DNA of 32,484 bases from Octopus bimaculoides. Taxonomy: Eukaryota. This document shows, piece by piece, positions 1,398 to 15,458 of this stretch. The stretch lies in contig NC_068987.1 of NCBI RefSeq assembly GCF_001194135.2, positions 74,274,926-74,307,409 of the forward strand. Direction: 5' to 3'. Position 1 is the first letter of the stretch; each line of letters opens with the position of its first letter. The notes under the pieces are model-generated. The model made no database searches and had not been told where the DNA came from. It saw nothing but the letters and a program-made list of their open reading frames with translations. The position numbers and the translations under genes were made by a program.

Positions 1398-1789
1398 AAA
1401 TAAGCAAAAGGTGAAATGTAACTATAAACATACAAACAGTAGACCGTTTCTTTACATAATACGGCTTCTAACTGACTTAAGTTTTGTTTGTGAAGATGTT
1501 TTTTTTTTAGATTTGAAAACAAATTGCCGTTTACATGCTTCAGTCATGCTGGGGAACCGCTGTGAGGTCAAACAAATCGTCCCCAGTAATTATTTTTTTA
1601 ATGTTTGGTACCTATTCTGTCAGTTCTCTTTTGCCAAACCGCTAAGTTACATGGACGTAAACAAGCCAACACCGGCTGTCAAGCGGTATGTGGGGTGTGT
1701 GCTAACACAAACACAAAAACACACATACACACATACATACATAGACAAACATGCATACACACAGGCATATATACTTGCATACACACATA

Positions 1790-1804
1790 CATACATACAT
1801 ACAC

Positions 1805-1837
<33 letters not shown>

Positions 1838-1887
1838 CATACATATATACATACATATATACATACACACATACATACATACATACA

Positions 1888-1917
<30 letters not shown>
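1790..1917. repeat. (TACA)n microsatellite
   Basis: Long TACA/CATA run. Confidence 0.95.
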
Positions 1918-1918
<1 letters not shown>

Positions 1919-2150
1919 TGGGGCACTGGATATGTAACACACTACCTAAATACCAAATCTAGAGAAATTAGATTTCTCAGAACCAGAAAGGAGAAAGCTG
2001 ATTCGAAGACAGCAGATTCAAGCCATCGCTGGAACTGAAAAAATTTGTAAAACTTTCCAGAAGTTTATCATTTAAGTATATATGAGCATGTCTAGACATG
2101 CAACTATATGCATGAGAATACATACATTAAACAAAACACAAATCTGCACA
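1917..2150 (+). mobile_element. 5'-truncated R4/Dong-like RLE non-LTR retrotransposon 3' end (copy 1) in (TACA)n
   Basis: With two frameshifts it reads IGAL(G)YVTHYLNT-NLEKLDFSEPERRKLIRRQQIQAIAGTEKICKTFQKFII* (stop 2073-2075). This resembles the IGALG...Q...GT..I.K C-terminus of R4-clade ORFs. Short 3'UTR, then CATACATAC. Confidence 0.75.
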
Positions 2151-2172
2151 CATACATACATACATACATACA

Positions 2173-2342
2173 TTACAAGTGCAATCTGTGAGTGAAATAG
2201 TAAAAATATGCAAGACTTTTCTCAAGTTCTAAATGTGAATTTGTCTGTGTTAACTATATCCCGAAGATGGAGCCTTGTATCTTTGTTGGAAACCGGCTCC
2301 CTCCTCAGTGGAAGATTTATAATAATTAAATAATAGAAGAGA
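2173..2342 (+). mobile_element. 5'-truncated R4/Dong-like 3' end (copy 2) in (TACA)n
   Basis: Reads LQVQSVSEIVKICKTFLKF* (stop 2230-2232), homologous to the copy 1 C-terminus. About 110-nt 3'UTR ending GA|CATACATAC. Confidence 0.75.
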
Positions 2343-2451
2343 CATACATACATACATACATACATACATACATACATACATACATACATACATGCATGCA
2401 TACATGCATACATACATACATGCATACATGCATACATACATACATACATAT

Positions 2452-2563
2452 ATTCAAAAATACTTTGTTGATGTTGAAATTCCAATGAAGGAGCCTTGGA
2501 TTTAGGTTAGAAACCGGCTCTTTCTCTGTTGGCAAGAAATCTTGAAATAAAACTGAATAATGA
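2452..2563 (+). mobile_element. 3'UTR-only copy (copy 3) of the same retrotransposon group in (TACA)n
   Basis: Shares the GGAGCC-20nt-GGCTC motif with the copy 2 UTR and ends GA|CATACATAC. Confidence 0.65.
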
Positions 2564-2873
2564 CATACATACATACATACATATGGCGGGCCTTCGCACA
2601 GTTTTTTGTCTATCAAATTTATTTACAAGGTATTACTGGNNNNNNNNNNNNNNNNNNNNNNNNNNNNNNNNNNNNNNNNNNNNNNNNNNNNNNNNNNNNN
2701 NNNNNNNNNNNNNNNNNNNNNNNNNNNNNNNNNNNNNNNNNNNNNNNNNNNNNNNCCAGCAACGGAGTTTTGTTTCGTGGGGGTTTATTTTTTCTTTTCG
2801 AGGTTATTTCGAATGCTTTCAACGAATGTGACATCGAAATCACGCGTAAACGGTTCCTTTCCCAAAAAAAAGG

Positions 2874-3736: not shown

Positions 3737-3867
3737 TAGGCGCAAGTGTAGCTGTGTGGTTCAGTCCCATTGCGTCTTGGGCAAATATTTTCTTCTATAG
3801 CCTTAGGCCGACCAAAGCCTTGTGAGTGGATTTGGTAGATGGAAACTGAAAGAAATCCGTCGTATCT

Positions 3868-3907
<40 letters not shown>

Positions 3908-4162
3908 GTCTATCTCTGTGTGTGCGCGCGTGTGTGTATATGTGTGTCTTTGTGTCTGTGTTTGTTTCCAACCACTGCTTGACAACCGATGTCGATGTAT
4001 TTACGTTTCCGTGACTTAGCGGTTCGGCAAAAAGAGATCGATATAGCAAGTACTAGGCTTAGCAGAAAGTAAGTACTGGAGTCGATTAATTCGATTAAAA
4101 ATATTTCAAGGCGGTGCCACAGCATGGCCGCAGTCTAATGACTGAAACAAGAGATAAAAAAT
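3737..4162 (+). mobile_element. SINE type A, near full length, (CT)n/(GT)n centre
   Basis: Head taggcgcaagtgtagctgtgtggttcagtccc; core gccttgtgagtggatttggtagatggaaactgaaagaa; tail ...aaggcggtgccacagcatggccgcagtctaatgactgaaacaag. Confidence 0.92.
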
Positions 4163-5513: not shown

Positions 5514-6999
5514 AAGCATTATTGTGACAGATGACCAGGAAACATAATATTTTCAAAGTCATGTATTTGTAATCTTTCTATATCTCTATACAATTTCTCT
5601 AAAAGTCGTTTGTATAATTTATTTCATACTCAAATATACCCGATCTTTTCTTTTTTACTGAAACTACGCTATTTTTTAATATATTTTATAACTTTGTTGT
5701 TTAGGCACAAGTCTATACTGATTGCAATCAAAATAATCTCATTTTTTTACAAGAATTCCTAGTTGCACATTATCCATTATGTGCCTTTCCTGTTCTTAAG
5801 ACAGCGAAGGGTGATTTGAGAGTGATTTTACTATTTTTAGCAGTTTGAGCGATCACTTAGAGACTCCCTTTTTTTTCCATGCAGAAGTGTTGGTTTGTTA
5901 TTCTCGTCATTGTCGTCATCGTTTCAATGTTCACATCGCCATGTTGATATGGGTTGGACAGAATTTTTTCAATGTTTCACCAAGGCTTTCCGATCTTTTC
6001 TGTTTGGCTTCCACTTTTCAATTTCTTCAATTTTTGCTCAAATTGATTTCTTATTTGGTGCATTGGTGAAGTTTTGTATTGTAATCATTGACATGAAATT
6101 CATTTTCGCTATAAATCAATAAATAAAGAGTTAATAGCTCTTAAAGTTTGCAAATTTTGGGTAATTTTAGCCAATCAAAAGCCATAGACATATAGGTGCA
6201 GGTTTCCAGTGTAACAAGCCAAGCATTTTCGCTTATTGAATGCTTAAAACACTTGAGGTATGAAGTGGTCGTGAGATGTACTAAAAATAATAGCTAAAGA
6301 GGCCTTAAATCACGCACCAGTTTTTTTTTTTCATAATCGTATGAATTTCTGTGTGTAGAATACAAATTTGCAAAAATTATCAGAAAAGTCCAAAATGTAA
6401 AAAAAAGTTACGAGGGCTTATGTGGTGTGAGTAAAGTAGAATTACGACAATATTTCATTTGTTTACAGTTGACAACACGAGCAGTCACGCACAAAATGAC
6501 AGTTTCCAAATCCTGTTTTCTGACTGTGTAAAAATTATATCAAAATTTAAACCTCTGTAACTTAAAAAAAAATCTGGAAAAAGTGAATTAGCTCTCGAGA
6601 TTCAGCATGGAAAATTACATCGATACACCAAATTTTGAAATTTTCAGTAAACTTTAAAATTTCCACAGGTGCAGCCAAACAGAAGAGATTCAAGCTTTCC
6701 TTTCTTTTTTACGCATCATAATGCATTTTTAAGCTAGTTCTTAAAACATCTAACCAAAGAGAATCCCTTAATGGGAAAGAAGCAAGATTATGGAAAAGTC
6801 ACATGGTTTGAACCTTTCCACAATCAGAGAAAAGGAATGTTGTTCTTTGCTTAAGCAAATCCGACGAGAATGGGAGTGCGATATTTCCAACAGCTCCATG
6901 TGAATTTCAAGCCCTCCAACAGCAACCTAGATACATATCTGAAATACTATGATTAGTAGTGATGGCCATATTACCTTTGATCATAGGTTTGCTGGATCA

Positions 7000-7428
7000 G
7001 GGCGTGGCTATGTGGTGAGAAGTTTGCTTCCCCAACACATAGTTCCAGGTTCAGTCCCACTCCACGGCACTTTAGGCATGTATTTTCTACTAAAGCCTCG
7101 AGCCAACCAAAGCCTTGTGAGTGGATTTGGTGGACGGAAATTGAAAGAAACCCGCATATATATATATGTGTATGTATATGTGTGTTTGTGTGCGTGTATG
7201 TGTTTGTGTGCGTGTGTTTATGTGTGTGTGTGTACCATTGCTTGATAATTGATGTTGGTGTGTTTACGTGTCTATAACTTAGTGGTCGGCAAAAGATATC
7301 GATAGAATAAGTACCAGGCGTTAAAAAAAATTATGCACTGGAGGTCGATTCGTTCGACTAAGAATTCTTCAAGGCGGTACCCCAGCATGGCCGCTGTCTA
7401 ATGACTGAAACGAGTAAAAAATAAAAGA
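7000..7428 (+). mobile_element. SINE type A, near full length
   Basis: Head ggcgtggctatgtggtgagaag...ggttcagtcccac, central TA/GT tract, tail ...aaggcggtaccccagcatggccgctgtctaatgactgaaac. Confidence 0.92.
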
Positions 7429-7574: not shown

Positions 7575-9036
7575 NNNNNNNNNNCTCTCTTTTTTTTTTT
7601 TTATTCTGCTTCCATTTATCCTTCACTCCACGTCTTTTTTTTAAAGATATCGCCTACTTATTTAACCTTCTCCTGTCTTCCTGCCGCTTTCAAGGAATCT
7701 CTGTTACGAATTAAGATTTATGAGATGTTTTATTTCTATTTATTTACTTATTTAATTATGTAATTATTTGTTTGTTTGTCTATTCTTGTCATGTGAAATA
7801 TCAATTACATGGAGAATTACAACAAAACACATCCAATCAACCCCCAAACTCCCTTGTCTTCTGAGGCGAAGGGTATCAATCTTGGTTCTCTTTCTTTTCT
7901 GTTCTTTTCTGACTTATGAAAACTCGGACGTATGTGGGGGGGGGGGGTGAGACTTATCAGCAGTTTTTGCCATGTATACTGCTGAAATGTAGGTAATTAG
8001 CTTGATTTAATGCGTTTGAGATAAGTTCCAGAACGCAATCCTTATCTACAACCACTTGCTATGTATATAAATAATATGTATGTATATATATGTATGTATC
8101 TATTATCTATATTGTACACACAAACGCGCGCGCACGCACGCACACACACACACACACGTATGCACACATATACACACACATTTATATACACAAGAGATGA
8201 AGGAGAAGAATGGGGAATGATACATCTTTCTTCTCATCAAATTCGTGTAAGATTCCAATCCAACATGTGTTTCTACTGTATAAGTGCACTGATGTCTTTT
8301 GATGTAGCGAACGTTTTTTCTAGTTGGACATGCAACCAATGTCACTTCAGCTCTGACAGCCTAAGCAGGACAGAACCTTGCTCTGAAGTCCAGATCCCTG
8401 TTGAAGATTTTGTCGCCGCCATCCAAGGTTTGTCCAAGCTGAACCTCGTCAATCGGATCTCTCGAAATTGCTGAAGAACGTTTGCCAATCCAACAACACC
8501 TCGGAGTGGCAGAAACTGCCCTTTGCTCTCCCTCCGCGTAACGAATGGGAATAGTAGATCCCTCACTTCTTCCCTGAAACGGCAGTTTGAGCTGTCCGAA
8601 TCTACCCCAACCACTGTTCATCTCAGGTGAATCATCAGCTCAACTCCGAACAATGATCGGCCACCTAACTTAAAAAAGAAGGCTGTTAATGTCAAATACA
8701 GCGAATTTGACATTAAAGGGGCTGTTCGCCTTCTTTCCTCTTTGTCCTTCCTCATCCCGTGTATCACACACTCCCTCAACCAACTGAAGGCGAAACATCT
8801 TCCGGCCCCTCCAGATGATCACCTATACTGGCCCGACCCACCAAGTTTTCTACAACCCATCTCCACCCCTGACAATGGCAGAAAGGCAACTGCCTCTTTT
8901 TCAGCGGGTTCTAGCACTGGGTTCGATGGCTTACGGCCTCAGCATCTCAAGGATGGTATCTCCCTGTTAGCCGGTGATGCCGGGCTCGAACTCTTTGAGA
9001 ACCTAACGCAATTCATAAACTTATTCTCGTCCGAGT

Positions 9037-9625
9037 GTGTCCTTGCCTATATTCGTCCCGTTCTTTGGGGTCAAACTATTTAGTCTCACCAAGCCCAACG
9101 GTAACCTCCACCCCATAGCAGTTGGTTGTACTCTGCGACGGCTCACAGCTAAAGTGTGCCTGTCCTCAGTTTCTAACTGCCTCACCGAGGAATTTTCCCT
9201 TCTTCAGCTAGGAGTGGGTAGTAAGCTAGGTTGTGAAGCTGCTGTTCATGTCACCAGAGCTTTCACTAACTTGTCCTCTGAGTCTCCAAAGGTCATCTTC
9301 AAACTTGACCTTAAGAATGCTTTTAACGTCATGCTCCGTGCTGTAAGGGCGAATTCCCCACCATTTTATCACTTTGCCTGGCAAGCCTATCGGGAGCCCT
9401 CCTCGTTTGGTGACCACCTCATCCCATCTGCCTCTGGAGTTCAACAAGGTGATCCCTATTCGCATTGGGTATTGATGATGTTACCTAGATGGTAGCCGAC
9501 CTAGACCTAAATGTCTGGTACCTCGATGATGCTTGTTTGGAAGGCCCTCCTGACAAGGTACTTGTCACTGCGAGGACGATGATCGAAGAACTTGGTCGCA
9601 GAAGTCTTAGCGCTAACAGCTCTAA
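9037..9625 (+). pseudogene. Reverse transcriptase core of the CRE-like element (frameshifted, deleted)
   Basis: RT motifs DLKNAFN, QQGDP and YLDD lie across at least two frames with stops. Confidence 0.85.
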
Positions 9626-9775
9626 ATGTGGCCAGCATTGGAGGTCTACTCGCACTCAGAGTGGGAGCTGACGTTTGTTGGGGACTGAGATGCGGCTGTG
9701 GTAGGACCCTCAACCCCACAGGTCTTCACGGTCTGTCTTGCCTCCTAAATACTGGTCGCTTCGCTAATCATTAAG

Positions 9776-10222
9776 TTGGTCCTGGCTCGGATTAATATCC
9801 CCTCAGTTCTGGAGCCGTCGGGGTTATCCAGAAGTGATGGAAAGAGACCAGATGGTCTTACCCTCTGTCTCTGGGTTAGAGGTAGGTGTCTCATTTGGGA
9901 TTCCATAGTCTGCGACTCCTTTGCTCCCTCCCACATCCTGTATGCTGCAGTTAGTGGGAAGGTCACTGCTTCCGTAGCCGAACGGAAGAAAACCCTGAAG
10001 TATCGGGATCTGACAGCAAACTACCTCTTCCAACCTGTGGCGTTTGAGACGTTCAGAGGGACTGGACCACTAACCGTGAAGTTCTGGTCAACTTCGGCAG
10101 TTCGCCTCACCGAGGTGTCAGGTGATGCCTGTGAGGGCGCTTGGCTTTCCCAACGCCTTAGCCTCGCCATCGCCCGCGGTAAGGCTGCGAACGTGCTGGC
10201 TTGCTTTAGTAGGTTTCGTTAA
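9776..10222 (+). pseudogene. Restriction-like endonuclease domain of the CRE-like element
   Basis: 148-aa ORF with LEPSGL..DGKRPDGLT..W..G..LIWD...E.KK..KY..L...F.PVAFET. Confidence 0.85.
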
Positions 10223-10896
10223 GTCTTGTGATGTACGACAAGTTACGGTGATAAAAAAAAAAAAAAAAAAAAAANNNNNNNNNNNNNNNNNNNNNNNNNN
10301 NNNNNNNNNNNNNNNNNNNNNNNNNNNNNNNNNNNNNNNNNNNNNNNNNNNNNNNNNNNNNNNNNNNNNNNNNNNNNNNNNNNNNNNNNNNNNNNNNNNN
10401 NNNNNNNNNNNNNNNNNNNNNNNNNNNNCCCACAAACGATCTCAATACAGTTTTAGCAGAAAGATTTGGAAGAATTAGATGAAAGTTCTCCGGTAATTTT
10501 CTTTGATGTAAATTAATGTTTCTGTTAATTCTAAAATTTGCCAACAAAGTCTTATAGAAAGACAATGTTCTAAAAGATGCACACGTTTATATGTTATATA
10601 TGAAAATAAAAATTTATTTGCATTTATGTGCATTTTGTTGGTTCAGTTGCAGTACATTCATCCACAGTAGACATTTCTATGTAGCTTTGTTCAAAGTTTT
10701 ATCTATACGAGTAGCTGAAGCGAACTAGAGAAATCCAGTGTTTGATAGTCCTTCTTAAAGTATATTGTAGGTGAAAGATCATAGTCTTAATGCACATGAT
10801 AGTAAAGACTGCTTTGAAATACAATATGGTCATAGTTTTGGTGTATTTTAAACTTTTAGAATTTAAGGGAATAGATGATTTCATATGCTTAGTATC

Positions 10897-11610
10897 TTTT
10901 ATCTTCTAATTATTGTCTGTCATTAGACTGCGGCAATGCTGAGGCACCGCCCTGAAGAATTTATAATCAAATGTTTCGATCTAGTACTTTTTTTAAAGCC
11001 TGATGCTTATTCTATTGTTCGCTTTTGCTGAACTGCTAAGTTACGGAGACATAAACACACCAACACCGGTTGTCAAGCGGTGGTGTAGGTGAGGGACAAA
11101 CACACACACACACACACAATATATATATATATATATATANNNNNNNNNNNNNNNNNNNNNNNNNNNNNNNNNNNNNNNNNNNNNNNNNNNNNNNNNNNNN
11201 NNNNNNNNNNNNNNNNNNNNNNNNNNNNNNNNNNNNNNNNNNNNNNNNNNNNNNNNNNNNNNNNNNNNNNNNNNNNNNNNNNNNNNNNNNNNNNNNNNNN
11301 NNNNNNNNNNNNNNNNNNNNNNNNNNNNNNNNNNNNNNNNNNNNNNNNNNNNNNNNNNNNNNNNNNNNNNNNNNNNNNNNNNNNNNNNNNNNNNNNNNNN
11401 NNNNNNNNNNNNNNNNNNNNNNNNNNNNNNNNNNNNNNNNNNNNNNNNNNNNNNNNNNNNNNNNNNNNNNNNNNNNNNNNNNNNNNNNNNNNNNNNNNNN
11501 NNNNNNNNNNNNNNNNNNNNNNNNNNNNNNNNNNNNNNNNNNNNNNNNNNNNNNNNNNNNNNNNNNNNNNNNNNNNNNNNNNNNNNNNNNNNNNNNNNNN
11601 NNNNNNNNNN

Positions 11611-11643
<33 letters not shown>

Positions 11644-11807
11644 CAGGCTTCTTTCAGTTTCCGTCTACCAAATCCATTCACAAAGTTTTGGTCGGGCCAA
11701 GACTATAGTAGAAGATACTTGCCCAAGGTACCACGCAGTGGGACTGACCTCGGAACCATGTGGTTGCGAAGCAAGCTACTTACCACACAGCCAGGCCTGC
11801 GCTTATA
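10897..11807 (-). mobile_element. SINE type A spanning a gap in its central (TA)n
   Basis: Tail revcomp at 10897-11100, head revcomp at 11641-11807 (cttctttcagtttccgtctaccaaatcc...cttaccacacagcc). Confidence 0.88.
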
Positions 11808-13807: not shown

Positions 13808-14489
13808 GTTCGCTCTTTCTCATTCTCTTTCTCTCTCGCACACGCGCACACTCACTCACACATATACACACACACGCACACATACTTACACACACTCTCC
13901 ATATGTCTAACATTTACTCTGTTACTCATCGTCTGTTTCTACTATCCCTTCATCGTTTGTTCATTGAAAAAAAAAAAAAAAAGCTTTCTCTTTCTCCCCC
14001 ACTCTTAGCCTTCTCTCCCTACTTTTGTCAGTCCATCAACATCGGATCTCCTCTGAGTTTTCTCTACCCTGAACATGTACGCGCACACACACACACACAC
14101 ACACACACTTTTCTACCTCATTTGTAAGCACTGTACTTTTACCTTATCCCACTTTCTTCTTAATGTTGTTTCTCCTACTGTATTTTCTTTGCCCTCCTCG
14201 ACACTCTGTCTCACTTTATCAGCTGGTCTCTTATTCTGAATCCTTTTTAGCGGGTTTCGTCATTAAAAATCGTCGTTGGTAGTTCACTATCTTAGGTAGG
14301 CTGCGTGTGAAGGTAAGAATGACCATACTTATATCGATGTTTCCATATTTTTTTTACCTGACACATTTGTGGTTGAAGAAAGACCGGAAGGGGGAGAGAT
14401 TACGTCATGTCGGCGAGTGAAAAGAAACGTTTCCCTAGGAGTGACGGATTACTGGCACAGAGAGGGTCTTCCATCGTCACAGTTGAAGA

Positions 14490-15140
14490 CGACGACTTCC
14501 GTGCTGAGTTTGACGGCGAAAGATGGACGGTAGAGCACTTCTTGAAAGGAGAACCTCCCGTACTGAGAAATAAGGTGAGCTGCAACGAGCACAGCCTGAA
14601 AGGAGAAGCCAAGTTTGAGTTCGAGACAGAGGTGAACAGGTGGATAGAGGAGGGCATCTTGATGCCAGGGAGTGAGGAGACGATGGGTGGTGTGCTGCCG
14701 TTGATGGCTGTGTTTCAGCCGACAAAGAATAAGGTTCTACCGGTGCTAGACTTCAGGGAACGGAACGAATATGTGTTCTATTATATGGGTGGTGAGGCAC
14801 CAGACGTGTGTGGAGAAACCCTTCGTGAGTGGAGACGAATGGAGGAGGGCGACTACGATCATCGACCTCAAATCAGCCTATCTGCAGCTCCATGTATCAG
14901 AGAAGTTGTGGAAGTACCAACTAGTGAACTACAGGGGCAGAACGTACTATTGTCTCGACTGGGTTTCAGCCTGAGTTCATATATCGACAATATCTCGGTA
15001 GATGAGAATGTGGCATCGGCAGAGGAAATCGCGGACTATCTTAGGAGGTTCGGGCTGACAACAAAACCATCAGAGGCTATAGAAGGAGGTACGGCGCTGA
15101 GGCTCAGGTTCGAAAGAGACAAAGTGGGTAGGTTTGTGTT
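14490..15140 (+). pseudogene. Retroviral-type RT fragment (catalytic YIDD degraded to YIDN, frameshifted)
   Basis: ORF track entries 14407-15153 and 14771-14974 together give the LTR-type RT motifs. Confidence 0.8.
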
Positions 15141-15458
15141 TCACAGCAGCTAGAGGTGGAAGGAATTACATCTGTGCAGGCTGGAGACGAAGTGTGGGCG
15201 AAGCCCCCGAGCGCTCGATGCACAATGCAGTGAGAAAAAGGAAGGGTGACAGCGATCAGTAATCCGAATAATGTATCAGTGGATGGAATGTCGAGTCACG
15301 TCCTGGATATTCGAAGGATATTCCAGGACGTGACGAAGAGGAGAAGGAAGGCAGTCCCGTAGCCCTACGGAGATCTCAAAGGAAAAGTCTCCCCACCCCA
15401 GGTGGATGGACGATTCCGAGACAGAACAGGAGAGCAGTGATCTTTAGATCAGGGGGCG

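Follow-up and report, generated by a model that had tools for sequence, protein, structure and literature searches.

Among site-specific retrotransposons, RLE-type LINEs such as R2 are understood best, and they are under development as gene-insertion tools. In the R4 clade, the targets described in the literature that we searched are 28S rDNA (R4) and (TAA)n only. Elements of this clade have no N-terminal zinc fingers and carry a diverged Myb/SANT-like N-terminal domain (PMC7998251), and a further trait of the clade is that its 5′ end carries a self-cleaving ribozyme of the HDV-like type (PMC3774820). Other microsatellites serve as targets for the HERO and Togen families (for HERO, PMC4640811), and in the literature searched ACAY repeats are targeted by Waldo elements of the R1 clade only. 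In Octopus, 'Dong-R4' LINEs have been reported as abundant and recently active, without target information (PMC13282606). We found no R4/Dong element with an ACAT or ACTT target in the open literature searched; such families may already be deposited in Repbase or Dfam.

The lineage described here has its closest relatives in Dong of Bombyx mori and the Dong-like elements of insects, molluscs and cnidarians, which form its sister group in our RT tree (93%) and provide its best BLASTP matches. Both Dong and the lineage have a single ORF with RT, CCHC motif and C-terminal RLE, in which N-terminal zinc fingers were not detected, and both appear to insert into microsatellites in a specific orientation, the target repeat then following their 3′ end. 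Unlike Dong with its (TAA)n, the lineage seems to target a tetranucleotide, (CATA)n, replaced by (CTTA)n in sister families; it also forms a separate clade (100%), set apart by a distinct C-terminal signature, GTVKICKTFLKF, and by a distinct conserved 3′UTR hairpin with a UUGUU loop. Because its target is not (TAA)n, it is not Dong in the strict sense. R4 of Ascaris and Parascaris, the founding member, belongs to the same clade (99%) and is likewise RLE-type and site-specific, but it uses one 28S rDNA site whereas the lineage is found on a dispersed simple repeat. The Waldo elements WaldoAg1, WaldoAg2 and WaldoFs1 (R1 clade) have ACAY as their target, which is essentially the same repeat. However, Waldo is APE-type and of an unrelated clade whereas the lineage is RLE-type, and the target common to the two is convergent. 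R2 (R2Bm, R2Tg) has the RLE, CCHC and RT architecture of the lineage and is its sole match among solved structures. Binding of the R2 protein to 3′UTR RNA and target-primed reverse transcription are established, making R2 a mechanistic model for the lineage, although R2 belongs to another clade, has a 28S target and N-terminal ZF/Myb domains, and is without the hairpin sequence of the lineage.

The window, by which we mean the whole 32,484-nt stretch of Octopus bimaculoides DNA analysed here, is eukaryotic in character, with 38% GC, 9 assembly gaps and numerous microsatellites and SINE copies. Between 1701 and 2583, four ACAT-unit arrays detected by TRF alternate with three non-repetitive islands (I1 to I3), as follows.

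1701–1916, plus strand: degenerate CA/ACAT microsatellite, the 5′ part of the target tract, continuous with a SINE (TRF 1719–1917, period 4, 49 units, 82% matches)
1917–2150, plus strand: I1, 5′-truncated, with the last ~52 codons of an RT-RLE ORF and the 3′UTR
2151–2172, plus strand: (CATA) tail of I1, which is also the target and 5′ flank of I2 (TRF 2150–2173, 6 units, 100%)
2173–2342, plus strand: I2, 5′-truncated, with the last 19 codons and stop (2173–2232) and the 3′UTR (2233–2342)
2343–2451, plus strand: (CATA)n tail of I2, doubling as the 5′ flank of I3 (TRF 2342–2450, 27 units, 92%)
2452–2563, plus strand: I3, 3′UTR only with no coding part, of a third, I2-related family
2564–2583, plus strand: (CATA)5 tail of I3, closing the target tract on its 3′ side (TRF 2563–2583, 5 units, 100%)

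A first-pass annotation had proposed three islands in the same orientation, each bounded by TACA repeats, and the sequence, TRF and the translations confirm all three at these positions. I1 begins within an IIGALGY motif, and its frame is broken by frameshifts or stops ahead of 1950. The intact ORF end spans 1950–2072, with the stop at 2073–2075 and the 3′UTR at 2076–2150, and the terminus reads ...RRQQIQAIAGTEKICKTFQKFII before the stop. The annotation had correctly recognised a C-terminal coding remnant in I1 but had set its stop too early, the true end (FQKFII, then the stop) lying 2 codons further on. By tblastn, I1 is 47% identical over 1920–2066 to aa 502–550 of a related protein, P0080, and its nucleotide identity to copies at five other loci (L001, L003, L006, L010 and L013) is 74–77%. 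I2 encodes LQVQSVSEIVKICKTFLKF with its stop at 2230–2232 and is 84% identical in nucleotides to L005 and 74% to L004, whilst I3 is 78.6% identical to the second element in L001. The C-terminal peptides of I1 and I2 share 10 of 19 aligned residues (53%), and the 3′UTRs of I2 and I3 have a 42-nt block in common at 78.6% identity. With 3′UTRs that differ between the I1 type and the I2/I3 type and termini only 53% identical, the division into at least two subfamilies holds. So does the identical GA/CATAC junction that had been noted for two islands: I2 and I3 both end ...GA/CATACATA, and I1 ends ...CTGCACA/CATACATA.

Outside the stack, same-strand ACAT-type arrays make up ~1.2% of the non-N window (arithmetic on TRF output), yet such arrays hold both the 5′ and the 3′ junction of every one of the three islands, in one orientation; the stack is therefore not due to chance. 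Sensitive blastn found no further island copies in the rest of the window, and neither blastn nor a hairpin covariance model (see below) found an element 3′ end in the other ACAT tracts of the window, unoccupied examples of which lie at 31482–31714 and 28719–28753. A 29-bp tandem repeat (3.3 copies, 97% identity) is found at 31906–32002; it adjoins opposed ACAT/TATG tracts at 31482–31714 and 31739–31777, with no LINE insertion in either.

The 41-aa peptide of I1 and the 19-aa peptide of I2 gave no match in a word-indexed protein search, whilst an exhaustive profile search returned 28 related proteins. Two of these (P0022 and P0008) are read-through translations of I1-type copies and two (P0004 and P0011) of I2-type copies. 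The long relatives P0025, P0028 and P0080 combine the end of an RT and a CCHC motif with a PD..E RLE domain and the GTVKICKTFLKF terminus seen in the islands. The order in P0025 and P0028 is CRLC...H...C (CCHC), YWWN, HNKPDxxxWD...EFSCP (the PD-(D/E)xK RLE), IIGALGY and LIRKLQxxSxxGTVKICKTFLKF, and the CCHC and RLE motifs CRLC...H...C, HNKPDxxxWD and xxEFSCP are also present in octopod L005 and L006. A second profile search, with an alignment built on the long relatives, gave 189 proteins, some of which extend into the RT (FVDDLKLY). Pfam returned RVT_1 matches and a weak zf-RVT match for the relatives, and PDB matches of the lineage were to R2 retrotransposon proteins only. Since the ORF ends are continuous with CCHC, RLE and RT, the islands are 5′-truncated 3′ ends of RLE-type non-LTR retrotransposons, and the earlier reading of two of them as C-termini of an RLE ORF stands. 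Among the copies of the octopod families that we recovered there is no intact ORF; all are decayed.

Independent copies at other loci were obtained via exact-protein look-up and one metagenome scan. The ACAT junctions in this small sample comprise ~9 informative 3′ ends and ~6 informative 5′ ends, and the visible junctions are biased, since Logan contigs tend to break at microsatellites. In L005, an octopod-like Logan contig, (ACAT)5.5 is followed from nt 23 by an I2-family element that ends ...AAGAGA/TG(CATA)n. A second independent stack is present in another octopod-like Logan contig, L001. Here an I1-like copy with a decayed ACAT tail precedes an I3-like copy and CATACATACGTACA; I2 is missing, and the copies are truncated at other points than in the window. 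In L014, (ATAC)56 and (TACA)43 enclose a truncated copy of 1.3 kb, with unique sequence beyond both arrays and no element 3′ end upstream of (ATAC)56. Two loci from a JGI metagenome, L027 and L028, end in (ACAT)29 and (ATAC)18. The octopod-like Logan contigs L004 and L013 end in decayed ACAT/ACAC-like sequence, the L013 junction being uninformative, and the junctions of L003 and L010 are disrupted. An I1-family copy in L006/L009 (1582–1613), 74.6% identical to I1, ends CTGCAC/CCACA(CCTA)n and not in (CATA)n, which points either to a third variant of the target or to a tail that has mutated and become homogenised. The expectation that TACA follows the 3′ ends was thus borne out for the window islands, L005, L014, L027 and L028 but not for this I1-family copy. 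The target repeat is also found at the 5′ junctions of differently truncated copies (the three in the window, L005, L014 and L029) and of an apparently full-length copy in L016. That copies with many different 5′ ends adjoin the repeat points to target specificity rather than to a templated tail alone. To judge from these junctions, an R4-clade lineage with (CATA)n specificity is present in at least three sequence sources.

The sister families, which are four clusters at 70% identity, are found on (ACTT)n. L015 has a copy between (ACTT)34 and (ACTG/ACTT)223, and in L029 a 5′-truncated copy begins right after (CTTA)17. L016, L017 and L018 contain 2–5 copies each, all in a single orientation, with 30–200 repeat units between copies. 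The apparently full-length copy in L016 stands directly after (ACTT)n and consists of a 248-nt 5′UTR, an ATG and ~3.4 kb of coding sequence. Its 287-aa N-terminus has no Pfam match, which fits the absence of zinc fingers, a Myb-like domain being one that needs HHpred-level sensitivity; its 5′UTR has no Rfam match at E≤1, and sequence models frequently overlook HDV-like ribozymes. Counted from the junction onwards, the unit of the repeat is CATA or CTTA, and in one case CCTA, all of which fit a CNTA pattern.

We consider it likely that the islands are independent 5′-truncated insertions of at least two, and probably three, R4-clade RLE families that are sisters of Dong and specific for (ACAT)n/(CATA)n in a fixed orientation. 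Three copies would then be stacked in one (ACAT)n tract because the lineage inserts into such four-letter repeats. Could the stack instead result from a single integration, in which the RT jumped end-to-end between RNA templates to give an I1-I2-I3 chimera, each part with a short tail? The R2 reverse transcriptase is a known template jumper, and such an event would account for the single orientation of all three islands, for two short tails without mismatches (6 and 5 units) and for the joining, once again, of an I1-like and an I3-like copy in L001. The I1/I3 pairs of the window and of L001 are, however, truncated differently and I2 is missing in L001; moreover, the three tails are unequal (6 units at 100%, 27 units at 92% and 5 units at 100%) and stacked sister copies lie 30–200 repeat units apart, which is no jump product. 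Unequal tails and long repeats between sister copies argue against template jumping as a general explanation, and since the jump itself needs microsatellite-tailed RNAs and a microsatellite target, it concerns the history of the stack only. We therefore regard it as an unlikely origin even there, and favour independent insertions.

The sequences flanking the target tract belong to one inverted SINE copy, in two parts.

1545–1700, minus strand: left half of the inverted SINE copy that hosts the stack in its internal microsatellite (blastn)
2584–2639, minus strand: right half of that SINE copy, running into an assembly gap (local alignment)

With 1380–1720 as the query, blastn matched 7 other SINE copies in the window at 69–81% identity. 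On the other side of the stack, the 64 nt past the last tail align to the post-microsatellite part of the same-orientation SINE copy at 11600–11760, with a score of 48, where 200 shuffles reached 35 at most. Besides the copy split by the stack, SINE copies are located at 905–1400, 3737–4140, 6950–7390, 10988–11760, 27640–27840 and 29380–29800. This SINE, which we take to be octopod-like, has two conserved halves around a variable internal microsatellite of (TA)n, (TG)n, (CA)n, (GA)n or (CG)n. Since this position is occupied by a microsatellite in the other copies too, the LINE fragments entered a pre-existing repeat and did not bring the whole tract with them. On the evidence of its flanks, the original landing pad at this locus is the internal CA/TA-rich microsatellite of a SINE, and because the stack sits in such an internal repeat, SINE-borne microsatellites may seed targets for microsatellite-specific LINEs.

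This bears on whether the repeats are targets at all. Near-random insertion of elements that encode an (ACAT)n tail, as in CR1/L2-type LINEs, would make the stack and the upstream repeats a matter of coincidence or later growth. A templated tail alone would account for a repeat at the 3′ end of every copy, tails can be expanded by slippage, and the window has ACAT tracts that are unoccupied. Yet copies truncated at different points directly adjoin the repeat (the three in the window, L005, L014 and L029), an apparently full-length sister copy begins right after (ACTT)n, and the stack of the window lies in a microsatellite that is the SINE's own. Furthermore, same-strand ACAT tracts are only ~1% of the window and all copies at multi-copy loci have one orientation. 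Taken together, these observations make a tail without target choice highly improbable. The first-pass annotation had suggested (TACA)n specificity and not a tail only; with 5′ junctions of truncated copies against (ACAT)n three times in the window, in L005 and in L014, and with the stack in a SINE-borne microsatellite, we retain insertion into the repeat as the preferred reading.

For the placement of the lineage we used the RLE LINE references (R2, R8, R9, R4, Dong, CRE, HERO, NeSL, Utopia) in the supplement S5B alignment of PMC5678591. In BLASTP against these references, the conceptual proteins of 4 long copies matched Dong best (B. mori and the mosquito DongAa; 181–228 bits), followed by Ascaris R4 at 112–142 bits, with all other RLE clades at ≤90 bits. 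An RT tree was built by neighbour joining with Kimura distances over 560 columns, with 500 bootstraps counted as bipartitions; octopod RT enters it as one decayed copy, L004, to which the window islands are tied via C-termini and 3′UTRs. In this tree the new lineage including L004 is recovered at 100%, its union with Dong at 93% and that of both with R4 at 99%, whilst HERO, NeSL/Utopia and R2 lie on the other side of a 99% split. The BLASTP ranking and the bootstraps (100/93/99) agree with the R4/Dong-like identity first proposed, and the sequence comparisons support assignment of the lineage to the R4 clade, as sister to Dong. The C-terminal domain on its own gave a poorly resolved tree, in which support for uniting the four ACTT families is 50% only and which does not tell ACAT from ACTT as the ancestral target.

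The remaining alternative, that the islands are a Waldo-like ACAY-specific element (R1 clade, APE-type) or a HERO-clade microsatellite family, starts from a published ACAY-targeting lineage (Waldo; PMC3812793) and from reports of some HERO families on microsatellites (PMC4640811), but has a negligible chance of being right: the ORF end is continuous with CCHC and RLE, with no APE endonuclease, the RT groups with R4/Dong and not with the R1 clade, the HERO references split off at 99–100% bootstrap with all 3 in a 100% clade of their own, and HERO, NeSL and R2 reach ≤90 bits against the 181–228 of Dong.

A 30-nt hairpin is found 28–49 nt before the tail in I2, I3 and most sister copies. It consists of an outer stem of 4–6 bp, UU, an inner stem of 5–6 bp closed by a UUGUU loop, the returning inner stem, C and the returning outer stem. 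In the window the hairpin model matches I2 and I3 only.

2270–2299, plus strand: hairpin of I2 (covariance model 42 bits, E 7e-10; fold; covariation)
2491–2520, plus strand: hairpin of I3 (covariance model 36.3 bits, E 4e-8)

Covariation was tested on a hand-cut 30-nt core from 9 copies. Of the cells assigned to stems, 90.9% were paired compared with 71.8% in shuffles (0/500 reached the observed value), and 10 of 11 pairs showed changes on both sides; sequences and structure were picked by eye, which favours this result. Controls with slid partners paired at 19–51%. MAFFT and RNAalifold on loosely cut windows recovered 7 pairs only, owing to 3 sequences with a 5-bp inner stem. The model also matched 7 loci outside its 9-sequence set (L022–L025 and L027–L029; 6 distinct sequences), all on the plus strand, and at 6 of these 7, those with the tail on the contig, the hairpin lies 33–46 nt from the tail. 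I1-type copies are without the UUGUU hairpin. The 3′UTR of I1 has a palindrome, GCATGTCTAGACATGC, at 2086–2101, which may be a different RNA recognition element for the I1 family. By eye, this small palindrome is retained but varied in the I1-family copies of L001, L003 and L006.

Two sister copies depart from the usual layout. At 6806–7039 of L016, the hairpin of an (ACTT)n-family copy adjoins the reverse-complement (TAAG)51 and the usual 30–45 nt spacer is absent, which suggests a rearrangement or an inverted neighbouring insertion. In L018, a hairpin at 9533–9562 lies just past the ORF end (9524) of a long copy, with no microsatellite within ~300 nt downstream, and the copy seems to have an interrupted 3′ end. 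Stringent-type CR1/L2 LINEs (UnaL2) resemble the lineage in having a 3′ stem-loop shortly before a tandem-repeat tail, but differ in being APE-type and not target-specific. Rfam found neither UnaL2 nor an R2 RNA element in the stack region, and its miRNA-like matches there were sub-threshold and were discarded as microsatellite artefacts. A CR1/L2-type tailed LINE was likewise rejected, the repeat being present also at the 5′ junctions of truncated copies.

Target-primed reverse transcription is the general background to the mechanism that we propose, in which R2 and Dong serve as analogues. The element protein would bind its own RNA via the 3′UTR hairpin, and the N-terminal DNA-binding region together with the RLE would recognise and nick the (TATG)n strand. 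Through its (CAUA)n 3′ end, the transcript could then pair with the nicked repeat and prime target-primed reverse transcription, with incomplete reverse transcription giving rise to the 5′ truncations. Each new copy would bring or regenerate (CATA)n at its 3′ end and so leave a fresh target directly downstream, with the result that head-to-tail stacks would accumulate. The R2 and Dong biology that underlies this proposal has been described (PMC10499050, PMC7998251, PMC3774820).

Other retroelements were also observed in the window. Two minus-strand fragments belong to a different RLE lineage: 26577–27094 encodes an RLE domain (NRPDIILKD...IDMTIP...IPIVIGALG) and 24775–25077 a terminus, ...IQKIALLGTAHILRKTLSIQ, with its stop. 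Each is then followed by ~20 units of (TAA)n on the minus strand, the canonical Dong-type tail and target, so that the 32-kb window contains R4-clade elements of both the (TAA)n and the (CATA)n type. A decayed non-LTR element at 8742–10274 (plus strand) has a weak RVT_1 match and an RLE-like end (KRPDG...WD), then A22 at 10253–10274; by eye its RT stretch, HPIAVGCTLRRL...LQLGVGSKLGCEAAVH, is close to the Cre-1_BM (CRE-II) reference in the PMC5678591 alignment. At 14407–15153 (plus strand), a 248-aa ORF has retroelement-like motifs, VLPVLDFRERNEY and YIDNISV, and no Pfam match at E≤0.01; it may be a decayed pol fragment of LTR or DIRS type.

The lineage bears on how the target specificity of RLE LINEs evolves. 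It adds tetranucleotide targets to the two types that the literature searched gives for R4/Dong, with sister families one repeat-unit base apart, and it explains why, in cephalopods and other invertebrates, some ACAT and ACTT microsatellites contain stacks of LINE 3′ ends that all point the same way. Moreover, SINE-borne microsatellites can serve as landing pads for LINEs. Annotations of 'Dong-R4' pool lineages with different targets, which calls for caution in Octopus (PMC13282606). A series of targets differing by one base, together with a hairpin beside the tail, makes protein-DNA recognition and RNA-tail pairing separately testable. We give roughly even chances to a broader view, in which a widely distributed R4/Dong sub-clade, undescribed in the open literature searched, is specific for (CNTA)n and its families have switched by one base (CATA, CTTA and possibly CCTA), all keeping the UUGUU hairpin. 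If true, the (CNTA)n sub-clade would be a natural series for studying DNA target recognition by RLE LINEs and the pairing of their RNA 3′ end with that target, and perhaps for re-programming them.
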